Virus record (IMG/VR): IMGVR_UViG_3300026885_000046
Location: 1 to 37,535 of that record
DNA length: 37,535 nucleotides
Strand: one strand, 5' to 3'
This document shows positions 1,697 to 35,817 of this stretch, piece by piece; the stretch's first letter is position 1; each line of letters opens with the position of its first letter. Below the pieces are notes generated by a model. The model ran no database searches. It was not told the origin of the DNA and worked only from the letters and a program-made list of their open reading frames with translations. Position numbers and translations under genes: made by a program.

Positions 1697-1930
1697 ATGA
1701 CATTTCGTAAAATAGATAACGGGGTAGAAATAAAATACGATAATGGTTATACAATCAAGATTAAGGTTGAAGGAGATAAGCTTAAGCTGAGGGAAGAATA
1801 TGAAGGTAGACCGTACACTGACACGATGTTTTACCTCTCGCCAAGCCAAGCGATCGAAATAAAAAAGGCATTGAAAGAAGCTAAAAGCGCAGATGACGTA
1901 TTGAAGCTGTTGCAGGGCGTTATGAGATGA
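1697..1930 (+). CDS. Hypothetical protein (77 aa)
   Basis: Track ORF 1565..1930; ATG 1697 fits the leaderless promoter spacing; ATGA overlap with the next gene. Confidence 0.75.
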   Translation: MTFRKIDNGVEIKYDNGYTIKIKVEGDKLKLREEYEGRPYTDTMFYLSPSQAIEIKKALKEAKSADDVLKLLQGVMR

Positions 1931-4900
1931 TTTATAGACCACATTTTACATATATTGTAGCAGACACTCCAAAACAAACGCAGGCTAGAGAGGCTGCTGC
2001 AAGCGAAGAATGGAGGAAAAGGCTCCTCCTAAGACCTTATGAGATTAGAACGCAACATGAGTCAGTAACGTCTATACCTAGAGAAGTAATAGTAAAGCTT
2101 ACACACCTTTCAACACATGAGCAAGAACCAATCGTTAACCCGCCAGCACATATAACCCTATTACGTATCATAAGGCCTCGTGAGAGTGAACAAGAACCAA
2201 ACCCGCCAGCACATGAACAAAGGCGTATCTATTTCTTTGGAGGATCTTCCCCTAATTTGCCTACCGACCTCCAGAAGCCTAGGCCGTTTATAACATATGT
2301 GCCTAATAGTTTTTGGGAGCAGATTACCCATAAGCAGGAAACAAACTCATCTGTTATACACCACACCGAAGGCCTTAGCCCGTGGGCACGTAGTCATATA
2401 GCAATGGCGCCTGGTGAAAGAACTCCAACACCTAAACTAACGCCGTTCGATCAGCTCCACATTGCAGCATCTGGTATCGAAGGGTCCCCAACACTGAATT
2501 CTGGTCCTGTAATACCACAACAAACCGTGCCAGTAACGATAGGAAGGACATTAAGTTATATACACCAAACTGAAGGTGTTAGTTCCTCACCACCACCTAG
2601 CCCCCCACCACAATCTTCACCACCAGCTAGCCACACATCTTCACAATCCAGTAACCCATTCGGCTTCTTCGGTTCCTTAGTCGGTTCATTTGTTAATGCT
2701 GTGACCAGCGCAGTAAGTAGAGGTAATAATTCGGGAGGAGGTCAATCAAATAACCCGCTCACGTCGTTCCTCAGCTCTGCTGCAAATGCCGTGTCTAGCG
2801 TAACAAATGCTATCGGAAACACAATAAGTCATGGCCAAATCGTTGCTAATGCTGCAACTTCTGGAGGCCAACCCAGTAACCCATTCGGTGCGATAGGTTC
2901 GTTCTTCGGTTCAATCGGCAGCGGCATAACTAATGCTGCGTCAACATTTGTTAGTGATGTAACTAATGCAGCGAAGAGTGTTGGCAATGCGGTACATAAC
3001 GTTGAGAACGCAGAAATTAATGCAGCAAAAGGTATCGGGAGCGCAGTAACTGGCGCATTATCAACTGCTGGGAAAGCAGTAACTGGCGCACTGACAGATG
3101 TCGGGAACACAGTAATTGGAGCACTTTCAGCTGCGAATAACGCGATACAGAACGCGTATAACTCTGCTTTCGGTAACCAAACCCAACAAGAGAAACAGCA
3201 ATTACAAAATCAGCTTAACCAGTTGAAACAGCAGGGACAACAAGAGTTGAACCAAATTAGCCAAGAGAAACAGCAGATACAGTCTCAGTTGCAACAAGTG
3301 CAGCAACAAGCTCAACAGGAATTAAACCAGGTTAATCAGGAAAAGCAACAAGTACAGTCTCAGTTGCAACAAGTCCAACAACAAGCCCAACAGGAGTTGA
3401 CTCAAATCAGTCAGAACGAACAACAATTACAGAACGCGTTACAACAAATACAACAATACCAAGCTCAAGCGATGCAGATGTTACAACAGAACCCTAACAA
3501 CCCGCAATTACAGAACTACTTACAACAACTGCAACAAGCTCAACAACAAGTAGAACAAGGACTGACCCAGTTACAACAAGAACAACAACAAATACAATCT
3601 CAGTTACAGCAAGCACAGTTACAAGGTCAACAAGAATTGGAACAACTTAACCAAGCTCAGCAACAAATACAGTCTCAGTTACAACAAGCTGAACAACAAG
3701 GTCAACAGGAGTTAACCCAACTTAACCAAGCTCAGCAACAAATACAGTCTCAGTTACAACAAGCTCAACAGCAAATACAGCAGGAGATGTCACAACTTAA
3801 CAAACAAGGACAAGGAGGTAACCCAATACAACAGTTCTTCAATGACGTTGCTGACGTTTCTGCGTTAGTAGGTTATTACGCTACCGAGGGGTTAGGAGGT
3901 GTAGGGGAGGAGTTAGCTCACGTTGTTCAAGGTAAAGGTCTTGAGAACTTCAGTCAAGCAGTTTCACAGTTCAACAAGGCTGGAGGGCAAAACATCGCTA
4001 GAGCTGTAGGTGACGTGACAGAAGTAGCGTTACCTGCAGTGGTTACTGCTGTCGTTGCACCGGAGTTGTTGCCGGCTGAGCTTATAGGCGAAACGTCATC
4101 GGTAGGTATCGGTGAAGTCGCCTCAAAGCTGACCACGGGTAAGTGGCAATCACTACCTGAGGTGCTTCAGGAGGCAAACGAGGGGGGCGTGTTAGGTGCT
4201 ATCGGTGAAGCAGGAGGTCTGGCGTTAGAGTCAGGTCTGGCGAAGGGGGCAGGAGCGTTAACGAAGCTATTAACAGGCAGTGAAGAAACCGCATCGAAGA
4301 TAGCAGGATTAACACCGGTATGGAGAGCAGCAGGTGGTGCTGAAGCAGGCGGTCTGGCGCTAGAGTCCAGCCTGGCGAAGGGGGCAGGAGCGTTAACGAA
4401 GCTATTAACAGGCAGTGAAGAAACCGCATCGAAGATAGCAGGATTAACACCGGTATGGAGAGCAGCAGGTGGTGCATTAACTAATACAGCATTACAGTTA
4501 CCTTTTACACAAAATCCCGAACAGTTAGCAATTGCCGGAATTGTAGGTGGTTTAGCAGGAGGACTGGGCCCTGGTGTAGCTGGTAAGCTGATGAGTAAAA
4601 TAGACGAAATTAGAGGAACTGGCGGTGTAGCGGAACTAGAGACGCTCAGATCTCCCCTCACTGGTGAGACCACAAAGGCGTGGAAGATAACGCTCCCTAA
4701 CGGAGACGTGTTACATTTAGTACCAAGAACTACGTTCGGTGAAGGAGATTTAGAGAGTTTCATAGACAGATACGTGAACGAAGTAGGCAAAAACAATCTG
4801 TTGGCTCACGTTACGCCGTCACGTAATTTCATTAAGGATGTAAAAGAAGGAGAAGTAGAAATAAAACCGAGCCAAAGTGCATCGGGAGACTGGGCATGGA

Positions 4901-6159
4901 GGATCCCTTCTAAAAATAACGAGTTCTACTTATCACCAGGAGAAGGTGAGCATGAGGCTGTAGCGTTAACAGGTTATACAGAGCTGAAGAGCACTGAACC
5001 AAGAGTGCCAGACTTTAGGTTGGGACAGTCAAGCGTAAGAAGGGTAATGGACAGGTTCTTACACCCATTCGACCAAGGTGGGATAATCCTGACACGTGGC
5101 GATATTGAAGTTGGTCCTACACCTCCGAGAGATCTGGTGGAGTATATCGCCCAGCTGAAAGCTAAATACGGAGGAGATAATAACGCAGTAATCAAAGAGT
5201 TATTGAGTAACCCCGAATACGGGCCGAAGTATATGGAATTTAGAAACGCGGTTAAAGAATTCAGTGCAGGAGAAGGGAAACCGGTAATAGGTTCTGAAGA
5301 CTTATTGGGCTTAAGTCACGAAAGACAAGCAATATTGTCAACTGGAGCGAAATTAAGGGGGACTGGTGAAGAGTACAACGTCTGGATAAGGCAAACACCA
5401 GAACTTCTAAAGAATTTGCCTGGGCCTTTACGTGACGTGTTATCTGACTGGTCGAGGCTGAAAGTCGTTGGTGCGGACATAATACCTGGTGAGCCCACAG
5501 ATTTGTTTAACGTAAACAAAGAGAACGAGAAAGGGTTGAGAGGTGAAAGGGAGTTCAAGGAGGAAGAGGAAATACCTGAGTTGAAAGAAGAGGAAGAGAG
5601 AGTACCTGAATCGGGAGAAGAGGAAGGGGAGTTGAAAGAACCAATATTACGAGAACCACTTTGGCCGGAACGTGAGCCACAACTAAGTGAGCCTCAGCTA
5701 GAGGACACGGGGTTACAGACATATACTTCACCTCCACGGGTCAATTATCCATCTCGTTCACCGATTGACAATCCGCAAATATTACCTCCACCTGCACCTT
5801 CACCTCCGCCTATCCGCTCACCTCCTATCAGTTCGCCACCTATCCGTTCACCACCACCTATCCGTTCGCCACAGATTAACTCACCACCGCCTATCAGTTC
5901 ACCTCCAATCAACTCACCAAAGATCTATTCACAGCCAATTTATTTACCTCCAACCTCAGTACCAGAGTACATAGAGATAGATTCACAATCATCGTCACCA
6001 CCCCCCGTGTTCTCTTCATCATCGATAACCGAAGGGGGATCATCAATACCAATGGGACCACCGCCAATGGTACCTTCGGTAATGCCAGGCGGATTTGGTG
6101 GGGGCGGTAACAACGTACAAGAAATTAGCGGAATGTCAGGTGAGGTAATATATCTATAA
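1927..6159 (+). CDS. 1410-aa multidomain protein: G/A/S-rich amphipathic region, Q-rich coiled coil, hydrophobic segments, globular domain, acidic and P-rich tail; probably virion-associated
   Basis: Long ORF with clear compositional domains; function inferred only. Confidence 0.8.
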   Translation: MIYRPHFTYIVADTPKQTQAREAAASEEWRKRLLLRPYEIRTQHESVTSIPREVIVKLTHLSTHEQEPIVNPPAHITLLRIIRPRESEQEPNPPAHEQRRIYFFGGSSPNLPTDLQKPRPFITYVPNSFWEQITHKQETNSSVIHHTEGLSPWARSHIAMAPGERTPTPKLTPFDQLHIAASGIEGSPTLNSGPVIPQQTVPVTIGRTLSYIHQTEGVSSSPPPSPPPQSSPPASHTSSQSSNPFGFFGSLVGSFVNAVTSAVSRGNNSGGGQSNNPLTSFLSSAANAVSSVTNAIGNTISHGQIVANAATSGGQPSNPFGAIGSFFGSIGSGITNAASTFVSDVTNAAKSVGNAVHNVENAEINAAKGIGSAVTGALSTAGKAVTGALTDVGNTVIGALSAANNAIQNAYNSAFGNQTQQEKQQLQNQLNQLKQQGQQELNQISQEKQQIQSQLQQVQQQAQQELNQVNQEKQQVQSQLQQVQQQAQQELTQISQNEQQLQNALQQIQQYQAQAMQMLQQNPNNPQLQNYLQQLQQAQQQVEQGLTQLQQEQQQIQSQLQQAQLQGQQELEQLNQAQQQIQSQLQQAEQQGQQELTQLNQAQQQIQSQLQQAQQQIQQEMSQLNKQGQGGNPIQQFFNDVADVSALVGYYATEGLGGVGEELAHVVQGKGLENFSQAVSQFNKAGGQNIARAVGDVTEVALPAVVTAVVAPELLPAELIGETSSVGIGEVASKLTTGKWQSLPEVLQEANEGGVLGAIGEAGGLALESGLAKGAGALTKLLTGSEETASKIAGLTPVWRAAGGAEAGGLALESSLAKGAGALTKLLTGSEETASKIAGLTPVWRAAGGALTNTALQLPFTQNPEQLAIAGIVGGLAGGLGPGVAGKLMSKIDEIRGTGGVAELETLRSPLTGETTKAWKITLPNGDVLHLVPRTTFGEGDLESFIDRYVNEVGKNNLLAHVTPSRNFIKDVKEGEVEIKPSQSASGDWAWRIPSKNNEFYLSPGEGEHEAVALTGYTELKSTEPRVPDFRLGQSSVRRVMDRFLHPFDQGGIILTRGDIEVGPTPPRDLVEYIAQLKAKYGGDNNAVIKELLSNPEYGPKYMEFRNAVKEFSAGEGKPVIGSEDLLGLSHERQAILSTGAKLRGTGEEYNVWIRQTPELLKNLPGPLRDVLSDWSRLKVVGADIIPGEPTDLFNVNKENEKGLRGEREFKEEEEIPELKEEEERVPESGEEEGELKEPILREPLWPEREPQLSEPQLEDTGLQTYTSPPRVNYPSRSPIDNPQILPPPAPSPPPIRSPPISSPPIRSPPPIRSPQINSPPPISSPPINSPKIYSQPIYLPPTSVPEYIEIDSQSSSPPPVFSSSSITEGGSSIPMGPPPMVPSVMPGGFGGGGNNVQEISGMSGEVIYL
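3175..3810 (+). repeat. Gln-rich imperfect 75-bp (25-aa) coding repeats
   Basis: QQIQSQLQQxQQQxQQELxQxxQ units repeated several times. Confidence 0.85.
4207..4476 (+). repeat. Near-perfect 135-bp (45-aa) tandem duplication
   Basis: 4207-4341 vs 4342-4476, EAGGLALES...VWRAAGGA twice. Confidence 0.95.
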
Positions 6160-8829: not shown

Positions 8830-11800
8830 CCTATTTCTGCTCCTCATTCCCTTAGGAGTGCAAGCAGTGCAGTCTTTTCTGACATTTTACGTAAACGTTA
8901 TGGACTACGGTACAGTGCTTATGTTGCAGAATCAGAGTAACGTGTTAACGATTTACGAAATTCCGTCTTCCTTCTCCTCAGTGCCGTCGTTCCAAGGAGT
9001 ACAGACTACGGGAAAGGCGTTGGAGGCTGTTGAAAACGTTACATTGAAGAGCGGTGAGGTGGCACTCGTACATGAGTACGGAGTATCGGGCTTTTCGACA
9101 CAGAACTTCATTTACCAATACGTGAACGTACCAGGAATAGTTACATACTCTAACTCCACCACGTCCTATTATTCGTCTTCCACTATCTATGTAACACCAG
9201 ACTACGGCTACCAGTTACAGTTTACCCCGTTGTTCGGCATTCAAAACCAGCCCATAGATAGTGTGGAGTCAACGTCTTGGAGTGTGCTACCTTATTGGCA
9301 AAACGGTCAGTTAGTGATAAACAATCCTTATTCCATATCCGTGACAGTGACCAACTCGCAATCAATCGCTACTCCAGCCCCATTCGACCAGTTCTTAAAC
9401 ATAACAGAGTCACAGATAGCCTCAGCTTTAGGTTCCACTCCCGCATCCCAGTTATGGCAACAAGCAATGTCAGACCATTTCCTCAATTTACTGTTTCAGC
9501 AAAACGGACAAACGCTTTACGCTTGGGTACAAAATTACACTTCTTCATGGGTAGCGGTGTGGGTAAAACTACCTAACGGTATACCTGCGTCATCTTCAGT
9601 GACAATAACCATCGACTTCACGAACTCCATCCAATACCCTTACACTGGGATCTATTCAGCTGTCTACCCAGGTTACGATAACGGTGCAGATGTATTCATT
9701 CAGTACGGCTACTTCGGGAACCAGATACCTAGCGGGTGGACGACAGGCGTATATCAAGGATCTTTCAAACCAACGCCTACAGCGAATGGGCTAGAGATGA
9801 CAAATAATATTGCTAACGAAATGACTTACGTTTATGCATCGTTACCGAATACTAACGATTATACAGTTATCGTTTCGTGGTGGTATAGTGGCACATGTTA
9901 TGCGTTGAACCAGGAGTTATATGGAAACGTCCAATCTGTGACAACGTATTTTACATCATTTGCATCGGGGGGAATTACATTGGCAAGCGTTTTTGGTTTA
10001 AGTCAAATGTATGTTGCTAACGGATCTTATTATGAATCTGTAGGTGCGTTTGACGGTTCTGGTACACATTATGTTACAACATATTTCGCGATCCAGAGTA
10101 ATACCCTATATTATGGATACAGTAATCATAATTCACCGTTCCAGATAACATTACCATCTAGTTTTGGGTCTACTAGTCTAAAAACGAGTAGGAGTGCGCC
10201 GACAGTATTCATAGGTGCGGGATCACCATTCTCTAGTTATTCTGCCTACATATATCTAGATGTGGTGATCGTGATACCGACACCGCCCAATAACGTAATG
10301 CCGTCTATAACAAGTATTTCAACAAGCCTAGTAAGTGCTGGAGGCCAGTATATAGCCTGGGGGTATTCGCCAGTAAGCAACTCTATCAACGTCACCATCC
10401 ACGTTACATCGTTTCCATCAGCAAAGAGTAACGCTAGCATTGCCGTTTACTCGCCTAACGTAGGATACCAATCGACTGACGGTAATACTGGTTTTTACGC
10501 GTTATTTGTTGACTTCTACGGAGGTTCAATATACTTCCACTCCCCGACATCTAATAATTGGGTACAGCTCTACTCTTCTTTACCCCAACCTTCCACAGCA
10601 TACCCGTTCACCTTCACCGTCATCCTGACGGAGAACAGTGCCGGTAACGTCACCGTGTCCACCGTATACATCAACTCAACGGCTTACTCTGTCAATGTAA
10701 ACACTCCGTTCCCCTGGAGCCAGATAGGTTATGTTGGGATAAGGAGCGATGCCAACAACTTATTCTACGTCTCGTACTTCGCCGTATCCCCAGCACCCTA
10801 CGGCGGTGCAGAACAATTCGTGAACGACGCGGAGTCCGCGTCCTGGAAGGTGTTACCTTACTGGCAGAACGGCGAACTAGTAATAAACAGCATTGGGGCA
10901 AGTGCTGGAGGCCAGTATATAGCCTGGAGGTATTCGTCGATAAGGAACGTCATCAACGTTACCATTCACGTGGGAAGCTATCCTTCTAAAAGCACGTACG
11001 CAGGTATAGCGTTTTACAGCACGAGCCTGCAGAACTCCCCCTACTTTATGGTAGCATTTTACACCGGTGCTGTATACTATTTTACTGGCAGTAGTTCCAC
11101 TAGTCTCGCGACGTTCACGACGCCGAACCCTCCGTTCACAATGAGCATAATACTAGTTGAGAACTCTGCCGGTAACGTCACCGTACAAAGCGTCATAATA
11201 AACGGCACAACGACTTACAGCCTCAACACGAACGTGCCGTTCCCGTGGAGCCAGATCGCTTATATAGGGATAAGAAGCGACCCTGGCAACGTCTTCTATG
11301 TCTCATATTTCGGCGTCTCTCCTTTCCAGTACGGTATAGTCAAATACACCATTAATTCGGTCTCGTTACCTTCAATGCCCGATACTTCTTCAGCTACCGT
11401 CTTGATTTCTCAGCTCTCCAACGGCTCTTACGTCCTCCTCGGTATGTATAACGGGACGTGGCACGAGCTTAACCTACCGTTTACCAACCCCAGCGGAAAG
11501 TTCACAATCACGTTCAACCCAGTAGGTCCAGTGAACATAACGTTAAAGTCATCAAACGTCTTATCTTACGGTGCTTTGTTCTCTCCAGGTAACGGTGTGT
11601 TGTTGGAGGCTCAAAACGCTATACCCCCGTCAAACCCGACGAACTGGGAACCGTTAAGCTATGTGGGTACCAACGGAGAAGTAGGAGGAGGTGCTGATCC
11701 CACTTCACCTCAGTTCACTCCAGCTACACTTAACAGCATAAACTATTACCAGGGTGGTGCAATAGCAACAACGGATTGGGGTACCACGAACTTCACATAT

Positions 11801-12796
11801 TATGCCGTATCATTAGGACAAAGACCCCCAACGACGTCTGAGAATTACGTTACTGTCGGTACAGGTTTCACATCAGGTTGGGCTAATGCACCTTCTGGCT
11901 ATTACTCCTTCCAAAACGGGTTCATTGACATGGTATACATAGAGAACAACAGTATTGCGATATCACAGACCCCACCGTCTGTCTCTTCGATGTTGTTCTT
12001 CTTCGACCCCACATACATCACACAACAAGGTCAGTACATAAACCCCTTCACGAACCAGACCTACCAACTGACCGGCTCCCTAACTAGGGAAGTTAACGAC
12101 ATCGGTGTCATGACGTTCCTCAAACCAGGCATCACAAACCCCGTGGTTTATGTCCCGCCTTTCACGGAAGTAATCGTGAGGAACTCCACTAGCTCACAGA
12201 TATTCATAAATTACGAGACGTTCCCCTACCAGACTGCGACGTTAGCACCCGGCAATTACCAGATCACGGTCATCCTACTTTACACAGCTTATTCATTCGT
12301 TTTGATAAACTGGCAGGGCTGGAACGTGACTATTTATGAGAACGGGCAACCGATGATAATAAACGACCCGGTGACGCAACAAATACAGCCATTCGACACA
12401 CAAGGACTCCTATCTGCACAAGTTGTAGTAAACCCCAACACGAAAGTGTTGACCATTTACCTTCAGCCCCTCTCCTCTGGCGTAGGTTCTTATTCACCTA
12501 AGGAGATAGGGTTCCCGAAACCAGAACCGCAATTGATACTCCCGTTATCACAACAAACACCGTTTAGTCTGTCAACGCTTACAGTAAGCGGTATAGTTAC
12601 AGTGGCAATGGTCTTAGGAGTAGTGATCGCGTTAGCAAGGGCTAACCAAGACCTGTTAGGAAGTATAGCCGCAGGAGGTGCTGTAGTCGCTGTAGTAGGG
12701 ATCATAATACACCTCATACCGGTGGTCTTTATAGGGTCGGTCCTAGTTATAATATCAACGACATATAGGTTTGCAAGGAGGAGCAGTCAGTCATGA
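8804..12796 (+). CDS. Large secreted, C-terminally anchored beta-rich glycoprotein (adhesin/receptor-binding candidate; lectin-like repeats and DUF2341-like insert)
   Basis: Signal peptide MKKFLIL..., S/T/Y/N-rich, many sequons, C-terminal TM helices; LYAWVQNY..VAVWVKLP resembles DUF2341. Confidence 0.8.
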   Translation: MKKFLILSSLFLLLIPLGVQAVQSFLTFYVNVMDYGTVLMLQNQSNVLTIYEIPSSFSSVPSFQGVQTTGKALEAVENVTLKSGEVALVHEYGVSGFSTQNFIYQYVNVPGIVTYSNSTTSYYSSSTIYVTPDYGYQLQFTPLFGIQNQPIDSVESTSWSVLPYWQNGQLVINNPYSISVTVTNSQSIATPAPFDQFLNITESQIASALGSTPASQLWQQAMSDHFLNLLFQQNGQTLYAWVQNYTSSWVAVWVKLPNGIPASSSVTITIDFTNSIQYPYTGIYSAVYPGYDNGADVFIQYGYFGNQIPSGWTTGVYQGSFKPTPTANGLEMTNNIANEMTYVYASLPNTNDYTVIVSWWYSGTCYALNQELYGNVQSVTTYFTSFASGGITLASVFGLSQMYVANGSYYESVGAFDGSGTHYVTTYFAIQSNTLYYGYSNHNSPFQITLPSSFGSTSLKTSRSAPTVFIGAGSPFSSYSAYIYLDVVIVIPTPPNNVMPSITSISTSLVSAGGQYIAWGYSPVSNSINVTIHVTSFPSAKSNASIAVYSPNVGYQSTDGNTGFYALFVDFYGGSIYFHSPTSNNWVQLYSSLPQPSTAYPFTFTVILTENSAGNVTVSTVYINSTAYSVNVNTPFPWSQIGYVGIRSDANNLFYVSYFAVSPAPYGGAEQFVNDAESASWKVLPYWQNGELVINSIGASAGGQYIAWRYSSIRNVINVTIHVGSYPSKSTYAGIAFYSTSLQNSPYFMVAFYTGAVYYFTGSSSTSLATFTTPNPPFTMSIILVENSAGNVTVQSVIINGTTTYSLNTNVPFPWSQIAYIGIRSDPGNVFYVSYFGVSPFQYGIVKYTINSVSLPSMPDTSSATVLISQLSNGSYVLLGMYNGTWHELNLPFTNPSGKFTITFNPVGPVNITLKSSNVLSYGALFSPGNGVLLEAQNAIPPSNPTNWEPLSYVGTNGEVGGGADPTSPQFTPATLNSINYYQGGAIATTDWGTTNFTYYAVSLGQRPPTTSENYVTVGTGFTSGWANAPSGYYSFQNGFIDMVYIENNSIAISQTPPSVSSMLFFFDPTYITQQGQYINPFTNQTYQLTGSLTREVNDIGVMTFLKPGITNPVVYVPPFTEVIVRNSTSSQIFINYETFPYQTATLAPGNYQITVILLYTAYSFVLINWQGWNVTIYENGQPMIINDPVTQQIQPFDTQGLLSAQVVVNPNTKVLTIYLQPLSSGVGSYSPKEIGFPKPEPQLILPLSQQTPFSLSTLTVSGIVTVAMVLGVVIALARANQDLLGSIAAGGAVVAVVGIIIHLIPVVFIGSVLVIISTTYRFARRSSQS

Positions 12797-20118: not shown

Positions 20119-20521
20119 CTACGTAGAAGAAATTCTAATACAGTTACTCACTGCAAAACTCGGCGGTGAACGAAACGACGACCAAATATGGGAGTTCTTA
20201 AAGGGAGAGTTACTTGACCTCCACCTAAGGTACGGGCAGGACGTCGATGATAAATTTGTAAAATACGTTACTAAGGCACTAACAATACTGCTTTCCGACA
20301 TTAACGACTACACAGTTCCGCTCTTTAACGTCTGGAATGCAAAGGAGAAGTTGATAAGTGCACTCAAGGAGAGTAAAACGTTAATGAACAAGATAAAGAG
20401 TAAATACATAAGGACGGATGAACAAGAAAGAGAAGTGTTGAACATTGTAAACAATGTACTGATAAGTTCAGCGAAAAGTGTGTTGAAGGACTACAAGGTG
20501 ATATGGGATGAATCGGTATGA
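20084..20521 (+). CDS. Hypothetical protein
   Basis: 145-aa ORF with a GGTGA RBS before a TTG start. Confidence 0.7.
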   Translation: MSLQQYQQHRRSYVEEILIQLLTAKLGGERNDDQIWEFLKGELLDLHLRYGQDVDDKFVKYVTKALTILLSDINDYTVPLFNVWNAKEKLISALKESKTLMNKIKSKYIRTDEQEREVLNIVNNVLISSAKSVLKDYKVIWDESV

Positions 20522-21449
20522 CCCACGGATAGCCCAACTGCGATTTTTCGCATCTTTTTCCGTCGCTTTATACCATCTATGGACTCTCCAGTTAGTCCCT
20601 CTGATACTTTTTCGCCCTGGTTGGTTAGGGGTTCCCCTATTTTTCGAGTTATCGATTTTTCTGCTCCTTAACAGACTAGATGAAAACCCCTCACTAGCTC
20701 GTTACTTCAAGAGGAGGGTGAGGAGGATATGGCCACTTTATTTCCTCGCCGTCGTAGTAGTGTTCTTAGTCGACAAATACGTGTTTCACATGGACGTGAC
20801 ATATTACGACTTGATACTCCATTTTGCGTTCGTTTCCTATGTTCTCACACCGTTTTCCTTCCAGTACCTCTTCTGGTCTCTCCAGCTGGAGGAATGGATG
20901 TACTTAGTTATCCCCTTCATCCATCGAATGAGTGATAAAGCAAAGTTTTACGTCGCAACATCGCTAATTGTCATTACGTTGATATATAGTGCGTTTATAG
21001 TCCTCCTCCCCTACAACGAGTTCCACTTACTTTATTTTATGCCTCCCTTTTGGTTAGGAGCATATGGGTGGGGAATAATTGTTTACATTTTGCAGAAGAA
21101 GGGCTATAGACCGGGAAATATACACTACATTATATTAGGATTACTATTCGTGCAATATATTTATGTAACAATAAACGTAAAGGAGGAGATAATTTATGAG
21201 TTTTTCACGCGGTTTCTGATTTACAACTTGGCGTTACCCGCTTTCGCCTTCCTTATCTTAAACCCGCCTAAAGTCCTTAGTCGCGTAACGGTCTTCCTTG
21301 GTGAAGTGAGTTACGGGATCTATCTGTGGACTTTACTCTTTCAAGAACTCTTCGGATTAGCGGGAGTACTTTACGGCATACTGACCGCTGTCGTGACGGA
21401 GTTCCCATTGAGGAGAAGAGAAATAACAAAAAGGATGATGGAAGTATAG
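20508..21449 (+). CDS. Acyltransferase family 3 (OafA/YrhL-like) membrane O-acyltransferase
   Basis: LRFFA..VALYH, GVPLFFELS, FKRRVRRIWPLY, WSLQLEEWMY, LGEVSYGIYLW. Confidence 0.92.
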   Translation: MNRYDPRIAQLRFFASFSVALYHLWTLQLVPLILFRPGWLGVPLFFELSIFLLLNRLDENPSLARYFKRRVRRIWPLYFLAVVVVFLVDKYVFHMDVTYYDLILHFAFVSYVLTPFSFQYLFWSLQLEEWMYLVIPFIHRMSDKAKFYVATSLIVITLIYSAFIVLLPYNEFHLLYFMPPFWLGAYGWGIIVYILQKKGYRPGNIHYIILGLLFVQYIYVTINVKEEIIYEFFTRFLIYNLALPAFAFLILNPPKVLSRVTVFLGEVSYGIYLWTLLFQELFGLAGVLYGILTAVVTEFPLRRREITKRMMEV

Positions 21450-21480: not shown

Positions 21481-21759
21481 TGTATCATATGCATTTACAA
21501 AATTATTTAACCCTCTAATTGCTTATGTGCAACAATAGTCTTATTGAATCGTCTTCTTGCTTTTGTGCATGTATAACTTTGTTAAGAGTATTATTTGCTT
21601 ATGTGCATAATAATAATTATTTAAAGTTTCCTTTGCTTATGTGCAAGACCGAGATTATTGATTTTTACTCTTGCTTTTGTGCAGAGGTCGACTTATTGGT
21701 GTTTTACATTGTTTATATGCATACACAGGTTTATTGATCTTTGTTTTTGCTTGTGTGCA
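21481..21759 (-). ncRNA. TIGR-like dual-repeat guide-RNA array 2 (orphan), 7 units, 38-nt period
   Basis: Plus-strand TTGCTTnTGTGCA (one variant) at 21519, 21557, 21595, 21633, 21671, 21709, 21747 (degenerate 21481), with a TTATTGA-like loop between two 9-nt variable segments. Confidence 0.88.
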
Positions 21760-21832
21760 ATAGAGGTACCCTAATACTAGATAATAATCTTCAGCTTTTT
21801 TATTTTTAACCCCCCTTCCCGTATTATCTCTT

Positions 21833-22204
21833 ATGGGTATAATTGAAGCTTACAAGGCGTTAAAGGACATAAAATACAGAGCCTCGACTAAAGATAAGCC
21901 ACTTCAGATAGTAGACGTAAACGAAAATCACGTCTTGATGTGCAAAGGAGATACGTGTTTTGAGCTGTTTAAGCCGGAAATACGCAATAATCGTTACATA
22001 ATGCCCATTATAAAGTGGCGTGGTAACGGTACTAAGTTCAAAAGCCTTGAAAGGAAGTACATTTCAATGACAGACTTCAATTACTACACCAACACGGTTT
22101 CCTTTGAGGACTTTGTTAAAAGAATGAAAAAAATTAAAGAAGTCGAAAACGACTTATTGACGTTATCGAAGTTTTTCGATTACCTGAACTTGATGTTTAC
22201 ATGA
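21833..22204 (+). CDS. Hypothetical protein
   Basis: 123-aa ORF; T-rich promoter at 21799-21809. Confidence 0.75.
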   Translation: MGIIEAYKALKDIKYRASTKDKPLQIVDVNENHVLMCKGDTCFELFKPEIRNNRYIMPIIKWRGNGTKFKSLERKYISMTDFNYYTNTVSFEDFVKRMKKIKEVENDLLTLSKFFDYLNLMFT

Positions 22205-34505: not shown

Positions 34506-35258
34506 AACAAAGGAATTTCTCAATAATTTCACCTTTGCACACCAGCAAGGGAGTACCTTTAGATTTAGATAATGTATAATATGCACGGTAGCAAAGTCCT
34601 TACTTAATAATGGACAGCATGCACATCAGCAAATAAGGATGTCAATAAATACAAATCTGCACAACAGCAAGATCATTACTCAATAAGGGGCAACATGCAC
34701 ATAAATATAGAAGGACTCAACAAACTCACTGTTGCACAGAAGCAAGCCTTTTACTCACTAATAATCGAAATGCACATAAGCAAGAAACTAACTCAATAAA
34801 GTAACTCTTGCATATAAGCAACAAATATCGTCAATAAAAAGTTGGATGCACACAAGCAAACAAGGCATTTAATAATTGAAATCTTGCACATAAGCAAGAA
34901 AACCTCTTAATAATATGTAGACTGCACATAAGCAACAAAAATGATCAATAATGTATATTCTGCACACTAGCAAGAAAAATATTCAATAAACTCCGCACTG
35001 CACACAAGCAAGAGCAAGAATCAATAAGTCTAATCTTGCACACTAGCAAGATCTGCACAGTAGCAAAAGTGGTGATCTAATAATCGCTCTATTGCACATA
35101 AGCAAGAAAAAAGTTCAATAAAATTTAAAATGCACACTAGCAATAAAGCGATTCCATAATTTAGCTATTACACATCAGCAAAATTGTTAATTTGATAAAA
35201 GTAATATTGCACACCAGCAAGGGGTTATTTCAATAAGGCGTCCCGTGCACATCAGCAA
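34506..35258 (+). ncRNA. TIGR-like dual-repeat guide-RNA array 1 (20 edge repeats, 38-nt period)
   Basis: TGCACAnnAGCAA at 34536, 34582, 34620, 34658, 34696, 34733, 34771, 34809, 34847, 34885, 34923, 34961, 34999, 35037, 35054, 35093, 35131, 35169, 35208, 35246; loop TCAATAA; paired 9-nt spacers. Confidence 0.92.
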
Positions 35259-35268
35259 AGGATATTAA

Positions 35269-35817
35269 TCAAAGGGAGAACGTAGCGGACTCAAGGATAC
35301 AGTTAATTTTTGTAAAGTATAACCTCTCGTTCTTGAAAACAACGTTTAGTGTCTTATACAAATCTGCAAGGGAGAAACGGTAATGCGGATATATTAACTC
35401 AGCTTTATAATATACAGCACATTCTCCGAAATCATCTTTAAAGAAAGAGGGTAAAACGGGGACATTCCCGAACGTTATCCCGGCGTATATATAACCGACG
35501 TTTATCCCCTCCTCAAGGTAAATATACCAGTTACCCAAATACAGTGCGTTGATATTCTTCACCACATACGGTTTTTCGATTGGTGCCATTACGTTATTTG
35601 TCCACCTCTTCAACGGTTCCGTTTTCGCGTCTTCCGAAACGATAAAGGCGTTAATAAACGACTTCGGCAGGACATCAACAACCGGTGGGACGTACTCTTT
35701 TCCCTCCCTTTCCGCAATTAATCGTGAGATCGTAACCTTCTGAGGCTGACCGTTTTTATAAGCAAACTCCCCTTTCAACACTTTTTCAACTACGTCCTTA
35801 AACATCATCCTGATCAC
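35269..35817 (-). CDS. Hypothetical protein
   Basis: 182-aa ORF in an operon with the ATPase. Confidence 0.7.
   Translation of the reverse strand: MIRMMFKDVVEKVLKGEFAYKNGQPQKVTISRLIAEREGKEYVPPVVDVLPKSFINAFIVSEDAKTEPLKRWTNNVMAPIEKPYVVKNINALYLGNWYIYLEEGINVGYIYAGITFGNVPVLPSFFKDDFGECAVYYKAELIYPHYRFSLADLYKTLNVVFKNERLYFTKINCILESATFSL

Follow-up and report, generated by a model that had tools for sequence, protein, structure and literature searches.

A large tailed spindle virus of Sulfolobales carries two guide arrays of the TIGR type, one directly behind its tas gene (array 1) and another at a remote site on the opposite strand (array 2). The window analysed here is the whole IMG/VR contig IMGVR_UViG_3300026885_000046, a single stretch of 37,535 nt (Table 1). 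Array 2 is a genuine dual-repeat TIGR array, with repeats equal to those of the tas-linked array. Sequence comparison together with published work on TIGR-Tas suggests, with a probability of about 0.65, that it is an independently transcribed satellite array, the RNA of which would be cut and used in trans by a TasA-like protein for DNA binding.

Table 1. Positions of array 2, its flanking elements and the tas locus within the window
Feature	Position	Strand	Remarks
Array 2 (TIGR)	21494–21759	minus	Seven complete 38-nt units, exact period
Degenerate terminal edge of array 2, TGCATATGATACA	21481–21493	minus	8 of 13 edge positions retained (our count)
Leader and candidate promoter region of array 2	21760–21832	minus	Back-to-back with the gene at 21833; conserved in relatives
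T5 run, candidate archaeal oligo-T terminator	21428–21432	minus	About 50 nt past the terminal edge; direct reading
Acyltransferase gene	20508–21449	plus	Convergent with array 2; Pfam Acyl_transf_3, E 3.9e-23
123-aa gene	21833–22204	plus	Divergent from array 2; no family match
tas gene, TasA-like	33470–34501	plus	Opens with GTG at 33458, likely start ATG at 33470; 343/347 aa
Array 1	34502–35283	plus	About 20 units; 5'-truncated first unit directly after the tas stop codon

Each unit of array 2 is composed of a 13-nt edge repeat, a 9-nt spacer A, a 7-nt loop resembling TCAATAA and a 9-nt spacer B. The edge repeats match TGCACAnAAGCAA (TGCACAyAAGCAA) and begin at 21759, 21721, 21683, 21645, 21607, 21569 and 21531. 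These start positions agree with the seven units at an exact 38-nt period described in an earlier, sequence-only reading of the window, and direct reading of the minus strand reproduces the letters quoted there. In the second unit, beginning at 21721, the repeats are weakened (TGCATATAAACAA, with CCAATAA as its loop), and rare loop variants occur in four of the seven units. The element at 21493–21481 is a degenerate or truncated terminal edge without a loop after it, as the distal decay noted in that reading would have it; the seventh guide takes its 3' edge half (TGCATAT) from this element.

A composite pattern of edge, nine arbitrary nucleotides and loop, with up to three mismatches allowed, has 7 matches in array 2 and 13 in array 1, with no others in the window, against a mean of 0.00 in 100 dinucleotide-preserving shuffles. 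The earlier claim that the repeats of the two arrays match is upheld. Across 250 family units, the information content of the position profile is high at 1–13 and 23–29 and close to zero in either spacer. Both repeats begin with U and end with AA, the edge reading UG...CAA and the loop UC...UAA. Within the edge, UGC (positions 1–3) could pair with GCA (positions 10–12); all six positions are almost invariant. The two arrays have no spacer in common, the nearest single pair of 9-mers differing at two positions, and no Nop-domain or Tas gene adjoins array 2, its neighbours being the acyltransferase gene and the 123-aa gene; on both points the sequence-only reading was accurate.

Judged by profile comparison and predicted structure, the protein encoded at 33470 is a nuclease-less Tas of the TasA-like kind, with a predicted coiled coil, a Nop domain and two zinc-ribbon insertions. 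A profile of 27 homologues matches chain A of 9MTY, the published TasR–tigRNA–DNA structure, at E 1e-4, and the NCBIfam family TIGR_Tas_endo matches residues 12–264 at E 3e-10 with 40 bits, below its curated cutoff of 100 bits. The AF2 model built from the homologue alignment reaches a pLDDT of 89 and a pTM of 0.83, and its best 20 Foldseek matches in the PDB are TasR, TasH (9W04) and the IS110-family recombinases IS621 and ISCro4. Profile, fold and family matches thus sustain the earlier description of the protein as Tas-like. Pfam gives no Nop match for it, and a single-sequence phmmer search of the PDB returned nothing. Neither HNH nor RuvC was found, a permissive Pfam search (E up to 10) giving zinc-ribbon families only, and the first coiled-coil helix of the model begins at residue 7, too near the N-terminus for a RuvC or HNH domain to precede it. 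The two beta-rich insertions, at about residues 36–81 and 158–198, each contain an invariant Cys/His cluster. The protein contains an invariant Y292 and H298 within YEVLRKH, resembling YVQEKLGH of SpTasH; hhalign of the C-terminus against SpTasH aligned only the GIGP motif (E 0.2), which leaves the Y292/H298 dyad as a pattern-level lead. This is the sole Tas protein encoded in the genome, and among deposited genomes its homologues occur in YNP1 and ATSV only. Adjacency to tas, a feature of TIGR arrays, is seen in array 1, which contains one collapsed unit (35037–35053); array 2, at 11.7 kb and on the opposite strand, does not share it.

Over most of its length, the window is 70–83% identical in DNA sequence to the Sulfolobales viruses YNP1 and YNP2, relatives of large tailed spindle viruses, of which YNP2 is without tas. 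A pattern scan of IMG/VR found 15 loci with such TIGR units. Contigs L007, L014 and L019 carry an array of four to five units in the same slot and orientation as array 2. In the window and in these three contigs, the slot is bounded by the 3' end of the acyltransferase gene on one side and by the divergent 123-aa gene on the other. In four other contigs (L021, L011, L020 and L009) tas, array and convergent acyltransferase gene follow one another without interruption. The term orphan, given to array 2 in the sequence-only reading, holds in the window, where the array is not adjacent to tas, and fails for its homologue in L014, where a stretch of no more than about 2.5 kb separates the mini-array from tas and a main array of 24 units, all on one strand. 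Gene order around tas varies among the window, YNP1, L014 and L017, and the 12-kb distance and opposite strand of array 2 are the product of genome rearrangement. Compared with YNP1 and YNP2, the acyltransferase gene and array 2 together form an insertion of about 1.25 kb into an intergenic region of about 90 bp. YNP1 and YNP2 have nothing in the slot, and in L017 and L015 it is occupied by a 52-aa ORF (L017 3863–4021, minus strand; L015 1–100). This ORF has a TATA-like box of its own and weak, non-significant Pfam similarity to DUF6290 and RepB-RCR_reg (E 0.03–0.05).

Elsewhere in the window, a 1410-aa ORF (1927–6159) contains glutamine-rich 75-nt tandem repeats and a 96%-identical 135-nt duplication (3238–3801, 4206–4475). 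Its product has no Pfam match. The YNP1 homologue is annotated as 'putative Exonuclease SbcC', an annotation that may simply reflect a coiled coil.

The region between the first repeat of array 2 and the start codon of the 123-aa gene was described earlier as a back-to-back promoter arrangement, and this description agrees with a 5' leader of the array's own, conserved in the window, L007 and L014. The conserved stretch measures about 70 nt and includes the TATA-like element ATTATTATCTAG (at about 21777–21788 in the window) and GGGTACCyCTAT; GGGTACCTCTAT directly precedes the first repeat. Further upstream lies an A/T tract (21795–21812), TATA-like and probably common to both directions. Relatives that lack the array have kept this tract too, since it serves the 123-aa gene, and its conservation is thus uninformative on transcription of the array. 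Arrays on the tas side begin 2–3 nt past the stop codon of that gene and must share its transcript; a mini-array needs its own promoter. From the A/T-rich motifs and what is known of the archaeal consensus, array 2 appears to have one. On the downstream side, the T5 run at 21432–21428 falls within the last codons of the convergent acyltransferase gene, and a matching T5 run follows array 1 at 35307–35311, likewise within the end of a convergent gene. A scan for sigma-70 promoters and hairpin terminators, of a bacterial type not applicable to an archaeal virus, found no hairpin terminator, and Rfam recognised no known RNA family in the window.

The window also encodes a homologue of transcription factor TFB (30460–31473, plus strand) with two TFIIB repeats (E 3e-27) and a TFIIB zinc ribbon, and the same gene is annotated in YNP1 and YNP2. 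A viral TFB could redirect the host RNA polymerase, and might affect which promoters, that of array 2 included, fire at which time.

The repeats of array 2 are as well preserved as those of tas-linked arrays. Scored with a position weight matrix built from 230 units of other viruses, they average 30.6 bits against 32.6 for the family (SD 5.3; p = 0.30), and as a test for decay these scores do not separate array 2 from tas-linked arrays. The guides tell of turnover. All seven differ from each of 244 other units at no fewer than 6 of 18 positions, and 8 of 14 guides of array 1 have near-identical counterparts elsewhere. The flanks of array 2 are about 80% identical to those in L007, L014 and L019, and the spacers are wholly different; unrelated spacers between preserved repeats and such similar flanks mean that the guides were replaced and did not drift. 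The window, L014 and L017 all have the guide AGGAATTTC / TTTyACCTT in a tas-side array, and L014 has it in its array on the acyltransferase side as well, so the two kinds of array draw on one common pool of guides. The earlier argument for function over neutral tandem duplication gains from this combination, since intact repeats with private spacers argue against both duplication and decay.

Several further regularities were observed in the guides and arrays of the family. Some guides are identical or near-identical across viruses with Tas proteins only about 70% identical to that of the window, which suggests selection on the guide sequence. Examples are TCAGCTATT / TTAATGTAC, GAGAAACAC / AGGATCAAC and TGAGGTAAG / CAATCTACC, with sites in ATSV (L005; 9345, 9726), L008 (13028) and L017 (7030, 6137), among others. 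Among the 250 family units, window arrays included, spacer A is A-rich (40–60% A at positions 2–8) and spacer B is not, and G is very rare (3%) as the final base of spacer B. Such base bias could come from a bias in the targets, from avoidance of T runs or from a structural constraint. A collapsed unit, in which an edge and 4 nt are followed by another edge, occurs both in the window (35037–35066) and in the 53-unit array of L015 (3341–3324). Array 1 and the L015 array also have a run of identical guides in common, which together with the collapsed unit shows that array segments are inherited vertically, alongside turnover elsewhere.

An aberrant unit in which the loop is shifted, GGGTTGGTT-TTCAACA-AGAATCCTA or AGGATGTTA-TTCAACA-AGAATnCAA, recurs at the ends of many arrays or close to them. 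Its sites are 35246–35283 in the window, 10107 in L005, 13295 and 12609 in L008, 1516 in L021, 1885 in L015 and 3833 in L014, and a diverged copy closes array 1 of the window. Between tas and array, L021 has a GC-rich insert of about 330 nt (1075–1401) with hairpin-like GGGGATGCCCCG...GGGCGGGG elements, in contrast to most relatives, where the array begins 2–3 nt past the stop codon. The array of L020 ends in a similar GC-rich hairpin. Contig L016 (IMGVR_UViG_3300005860_000274; 7192 nt) carries tas and array twice, as a perfect inverted duplication at both ends, which is probably an assembly artefact.

The proposed working of array 2 follows the published behaviour of TIGR systems. The minus strand would be transcribed from a promoter within 21760–21812, back-to-back with the gene at 21833, and transcription would end at the T5 run at 21432–21428. 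A Tas dimer acting in trans would then cut the pre-tigRNA inside each edge repeat, giving 38-nt tigRNAs with an AAGCAA-like half-edge, spacer A, a UCAAUAA loop, spacer B and a UGCACA-like half-edge. Each ribonucleoprotein would bind an 18-bp DNA site made up of spacer A and the reverse complement of spacer B. Since the Tas protein has no nuclease domain, the expected outcome is binding, by transcription block or occlusion, and not cleavage. In published work, Tas is required for the cutting of dual-repeat arrays, which takes place at the middle of the edge repeat; SpTasH makes this cut itself by means of Y289/H296; each of the two spacers pairs with a different strand of one uninterrupted 18-bp site; and TasA ribonucleoproteins bind DNA and repress transcription. 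Processing needs only Tas and intact edges, so the use of a remote array in trans is straightforward. Array 2 would have arrived, or stayed, with the acyltransferase gene as a cassette. The suggestion made in the sequence-only reading that it is expressed at a different stage of infection is pure conjecture.

Target searches were based on a geometry derived from the published tigRNA1 and its target oligonucleotide, in which spacer A and then the reverse complement of spacer B are read along the target strand. For the 21 well-formed guides of both arrays, the window contains no site with two or fewer mismatches in any of four geometries, and none with three or fewer in the correct geometry. Self-targeting as a means of autoregulation was rejected, as no guide of either array matches the window. 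When 202 distinct family guides were compared with 284 kb of related viral DNA, YNP2 included, no site in the correct geometry had one mismatch or fewer, and the counts at two to three mismatches were similar to those of control geometries. Targeting of related viruses, the tas-less YNP2 among them, was rejected for want of any excess over the controls. As exact 18-mers, the seven guides of array 2 have 0, 4, 6, 0, 5, 16 and 3 matches in IMG/VR; one conserved guide has 6 matches in GTDB genomes, all in gut bacteria, and a different one has 11 in JGI metagenomes. None of the 18-mer matches comes from the hot-spring samples of the related contigs or has tblastx similarity to the virus group, and we read them as chance-level matches to unrelated contigs. 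The same difficulty with natural targets has been noted for TIGR systems generally (Faure et al. 2025, PMC12045711).

Some of these observations would also suit a stranded relic, that is, the distal piece of a once tas-linked array, split off by rearrangement or brought along with the acyltransferase gene, and neither expressed nor used. With tas, array and convergent acyltransferase gene contiguous in four contigs, an array on the acyltransferase side could be the tail of such a module. The differing gene orders around tas, the degenerate unit 2 and several degenerate loops, and target searches without a match are all compatible with a relic. So is the dispensability of the array, evident from the small ORF that L017 and L015 have in its slot and from the empty slot of YNP1 and YNP2. 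Decay by point mutation would, however, hit repeats and spacers alike, and the repeats of array 2 are statistically equal to those of tas-linked arrays, with spacers wholly unlike those of L007, L014 and L019 despite the similarity of the flanks. Also against a relic are a leader conserved in three viruses and the retention in L014 of a mini-array beside a full main array. On balance, we consider a relic unlikely.

It is very improbable that the repeats are protein-binding iterons, marking a replication origin or a partition site, and not guide RNA genes. Short, regularly spaced intergenic repeats beside a divergent promoter can be iterons, but the unit of array 2 has the same design and sequence as the arrays that begin 2–3 nt past the tas stop codon in many relatives, and fits the published TIGR order of edge, 9-nt spacer, loop and 9-nt spacer. 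Iterons would give the variable 9-mers no role, and a transcription unit is in keeping with the strand polarity, with the truncation of the terminal edge and with the T5 run downstream. Hardly any likelihood attaches to a virus-borne mini-CRISPR or a cluster of box C/D sRNAs, used by host Cas proteins or by Nop5–fibrillarin, even though Sulfolobales viruses can carry mini-CRISPRs, ATSV has a separate CRISPR-like repeat region (11703–11992), and Tas and tigRNAs are related to box C/D ribonucleoproteins. The alternation of 13- and 7-nt repeats with 9-nt spacers is unlike a single repeat of 24–37 nt, and no cas family was found among the window ORFs scanned with Pfam and NCBIfam. By direct reading, C box (RUGAUGA) and D box (CUGA) are both absent from edge and loop, in addition to the lack of an Rfam match. 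Array 2 displays the features neither of a CRISPR array nor of archaeal box C/D sRNAs.

Array 2 adds to what is known of a system described only in 2025, as it shows that the place of a TIGR array may be remote from tas and that such an array may be equipped with a leader of its own. The remote array has been kept in several related archaeal viruses while its guides were wholly exchanged, which would imply that Tas is able to take guides in trans. A separately led mini-array more than 10 kb from tas, forming a cassette with an acyltransferase gene and recurring with private guides, is not described in the literature searched. The existence of such an array also means that catalogues compiled from 10-kb flanks of tas miss arrays of this kind. 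With one effector and two arrays under what appear to be different promoters, the locus is a natural test case for the regulation of guide expression. Array 2 adds seven guides for searches of natural targets and reveals no new mechanism. More speculatively, and with considerable doubt, TIGR mini-arrays of this satellite kind may have promoters of their own and travel as guide cassettes together with a cargo gene (in this case the acyltransferase gene), exchanging their guides more quickly than the array linked to tas does. A virus might then control RNA-guided DNA binding at a second level, regulatory or temporal, through a private guide set with expression uncoupled from tas, and the arrays might also serve as recombination substrates that reshuffle viral genomes.

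The closest known system is TIGR-Tas of the dual-repeat type with a TasA effector (Faure et al. 2025, PMC12045711; Xu et al. 2026, preprint 10.64898/2026.09.09.750476). Array 2 resembles it in the alternation of edge and loop, the two 9-nt spacers and the truncated terminal edge, and the window as a whole in its effector with Nop domain and coiled coil but no nuclease, in being virus-borne, and in having the main array directly downstream of tas. The unit measures 38 nt (13 + 9 + 7 + 9) in the window and 36 nt in TIGR-Tas (TasA). Where TIGR-Tas has a CCA box C, and TasR arrays have UG/CCA, the edge ends in CAA and the loop in UAA. The two zinc-ribbon insertions distinguish the window protein from the TasA effectors described. 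Known arrays are located 'upstream, downstream or flanking' tas, unlike array 2 with its distance, opposite strand and own leader, and array 2 falls outside the 10-kb flanks of tas used by TIGRFinder. TIGR loci have been reported in archaeal viruses, and the ATSV array is cited as a TIGR-like array seen before (Faure et al. 2025, PMC12045711), so the system itself is already known. The array of ATSV was seen in 2016 (Hochstein et al., as cited by Faure et al. 2025), and TIGR was named in 2025.

ATSV (KU645528) belongs to the same virus group, and its Tas homologue is 72% identical to that of the window. Its repeat region (9232–10146) directly follows ATSV_B343 and agrees with the window arrays in edge repeat, loop repeat and 38-nt period. 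A single array, of 24 units, adjoins tas in ATSV, and a search with the edge motif showed no acyltransferase-linked mini-array. The region annotated as a 'possible viral CRISPR locus' (L005, 11703–11992) was considered as a second TIGR array and rejected because its repeat is of a different, CRISPR-like kind; about four copies of a 24-nt repeat (GTTGAAATAAGGAAGAACTGAAAG type) are separated there by longer spacers, 1.5 kb downstream of the TIGR array. Among CRISPR systems, orphan or remote arrays are used in trans by cas loci elsewhere in the genome. Array 2 is like them in standing apart from the effector gene, in having a repeat in common with the effector-linked array and in possessing its own leader. 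It is unlike them in its dual short spacers, which would pair with both DNA strands, in having no adaptation genes, and in an effector that would act as a Nop-domain dimer.
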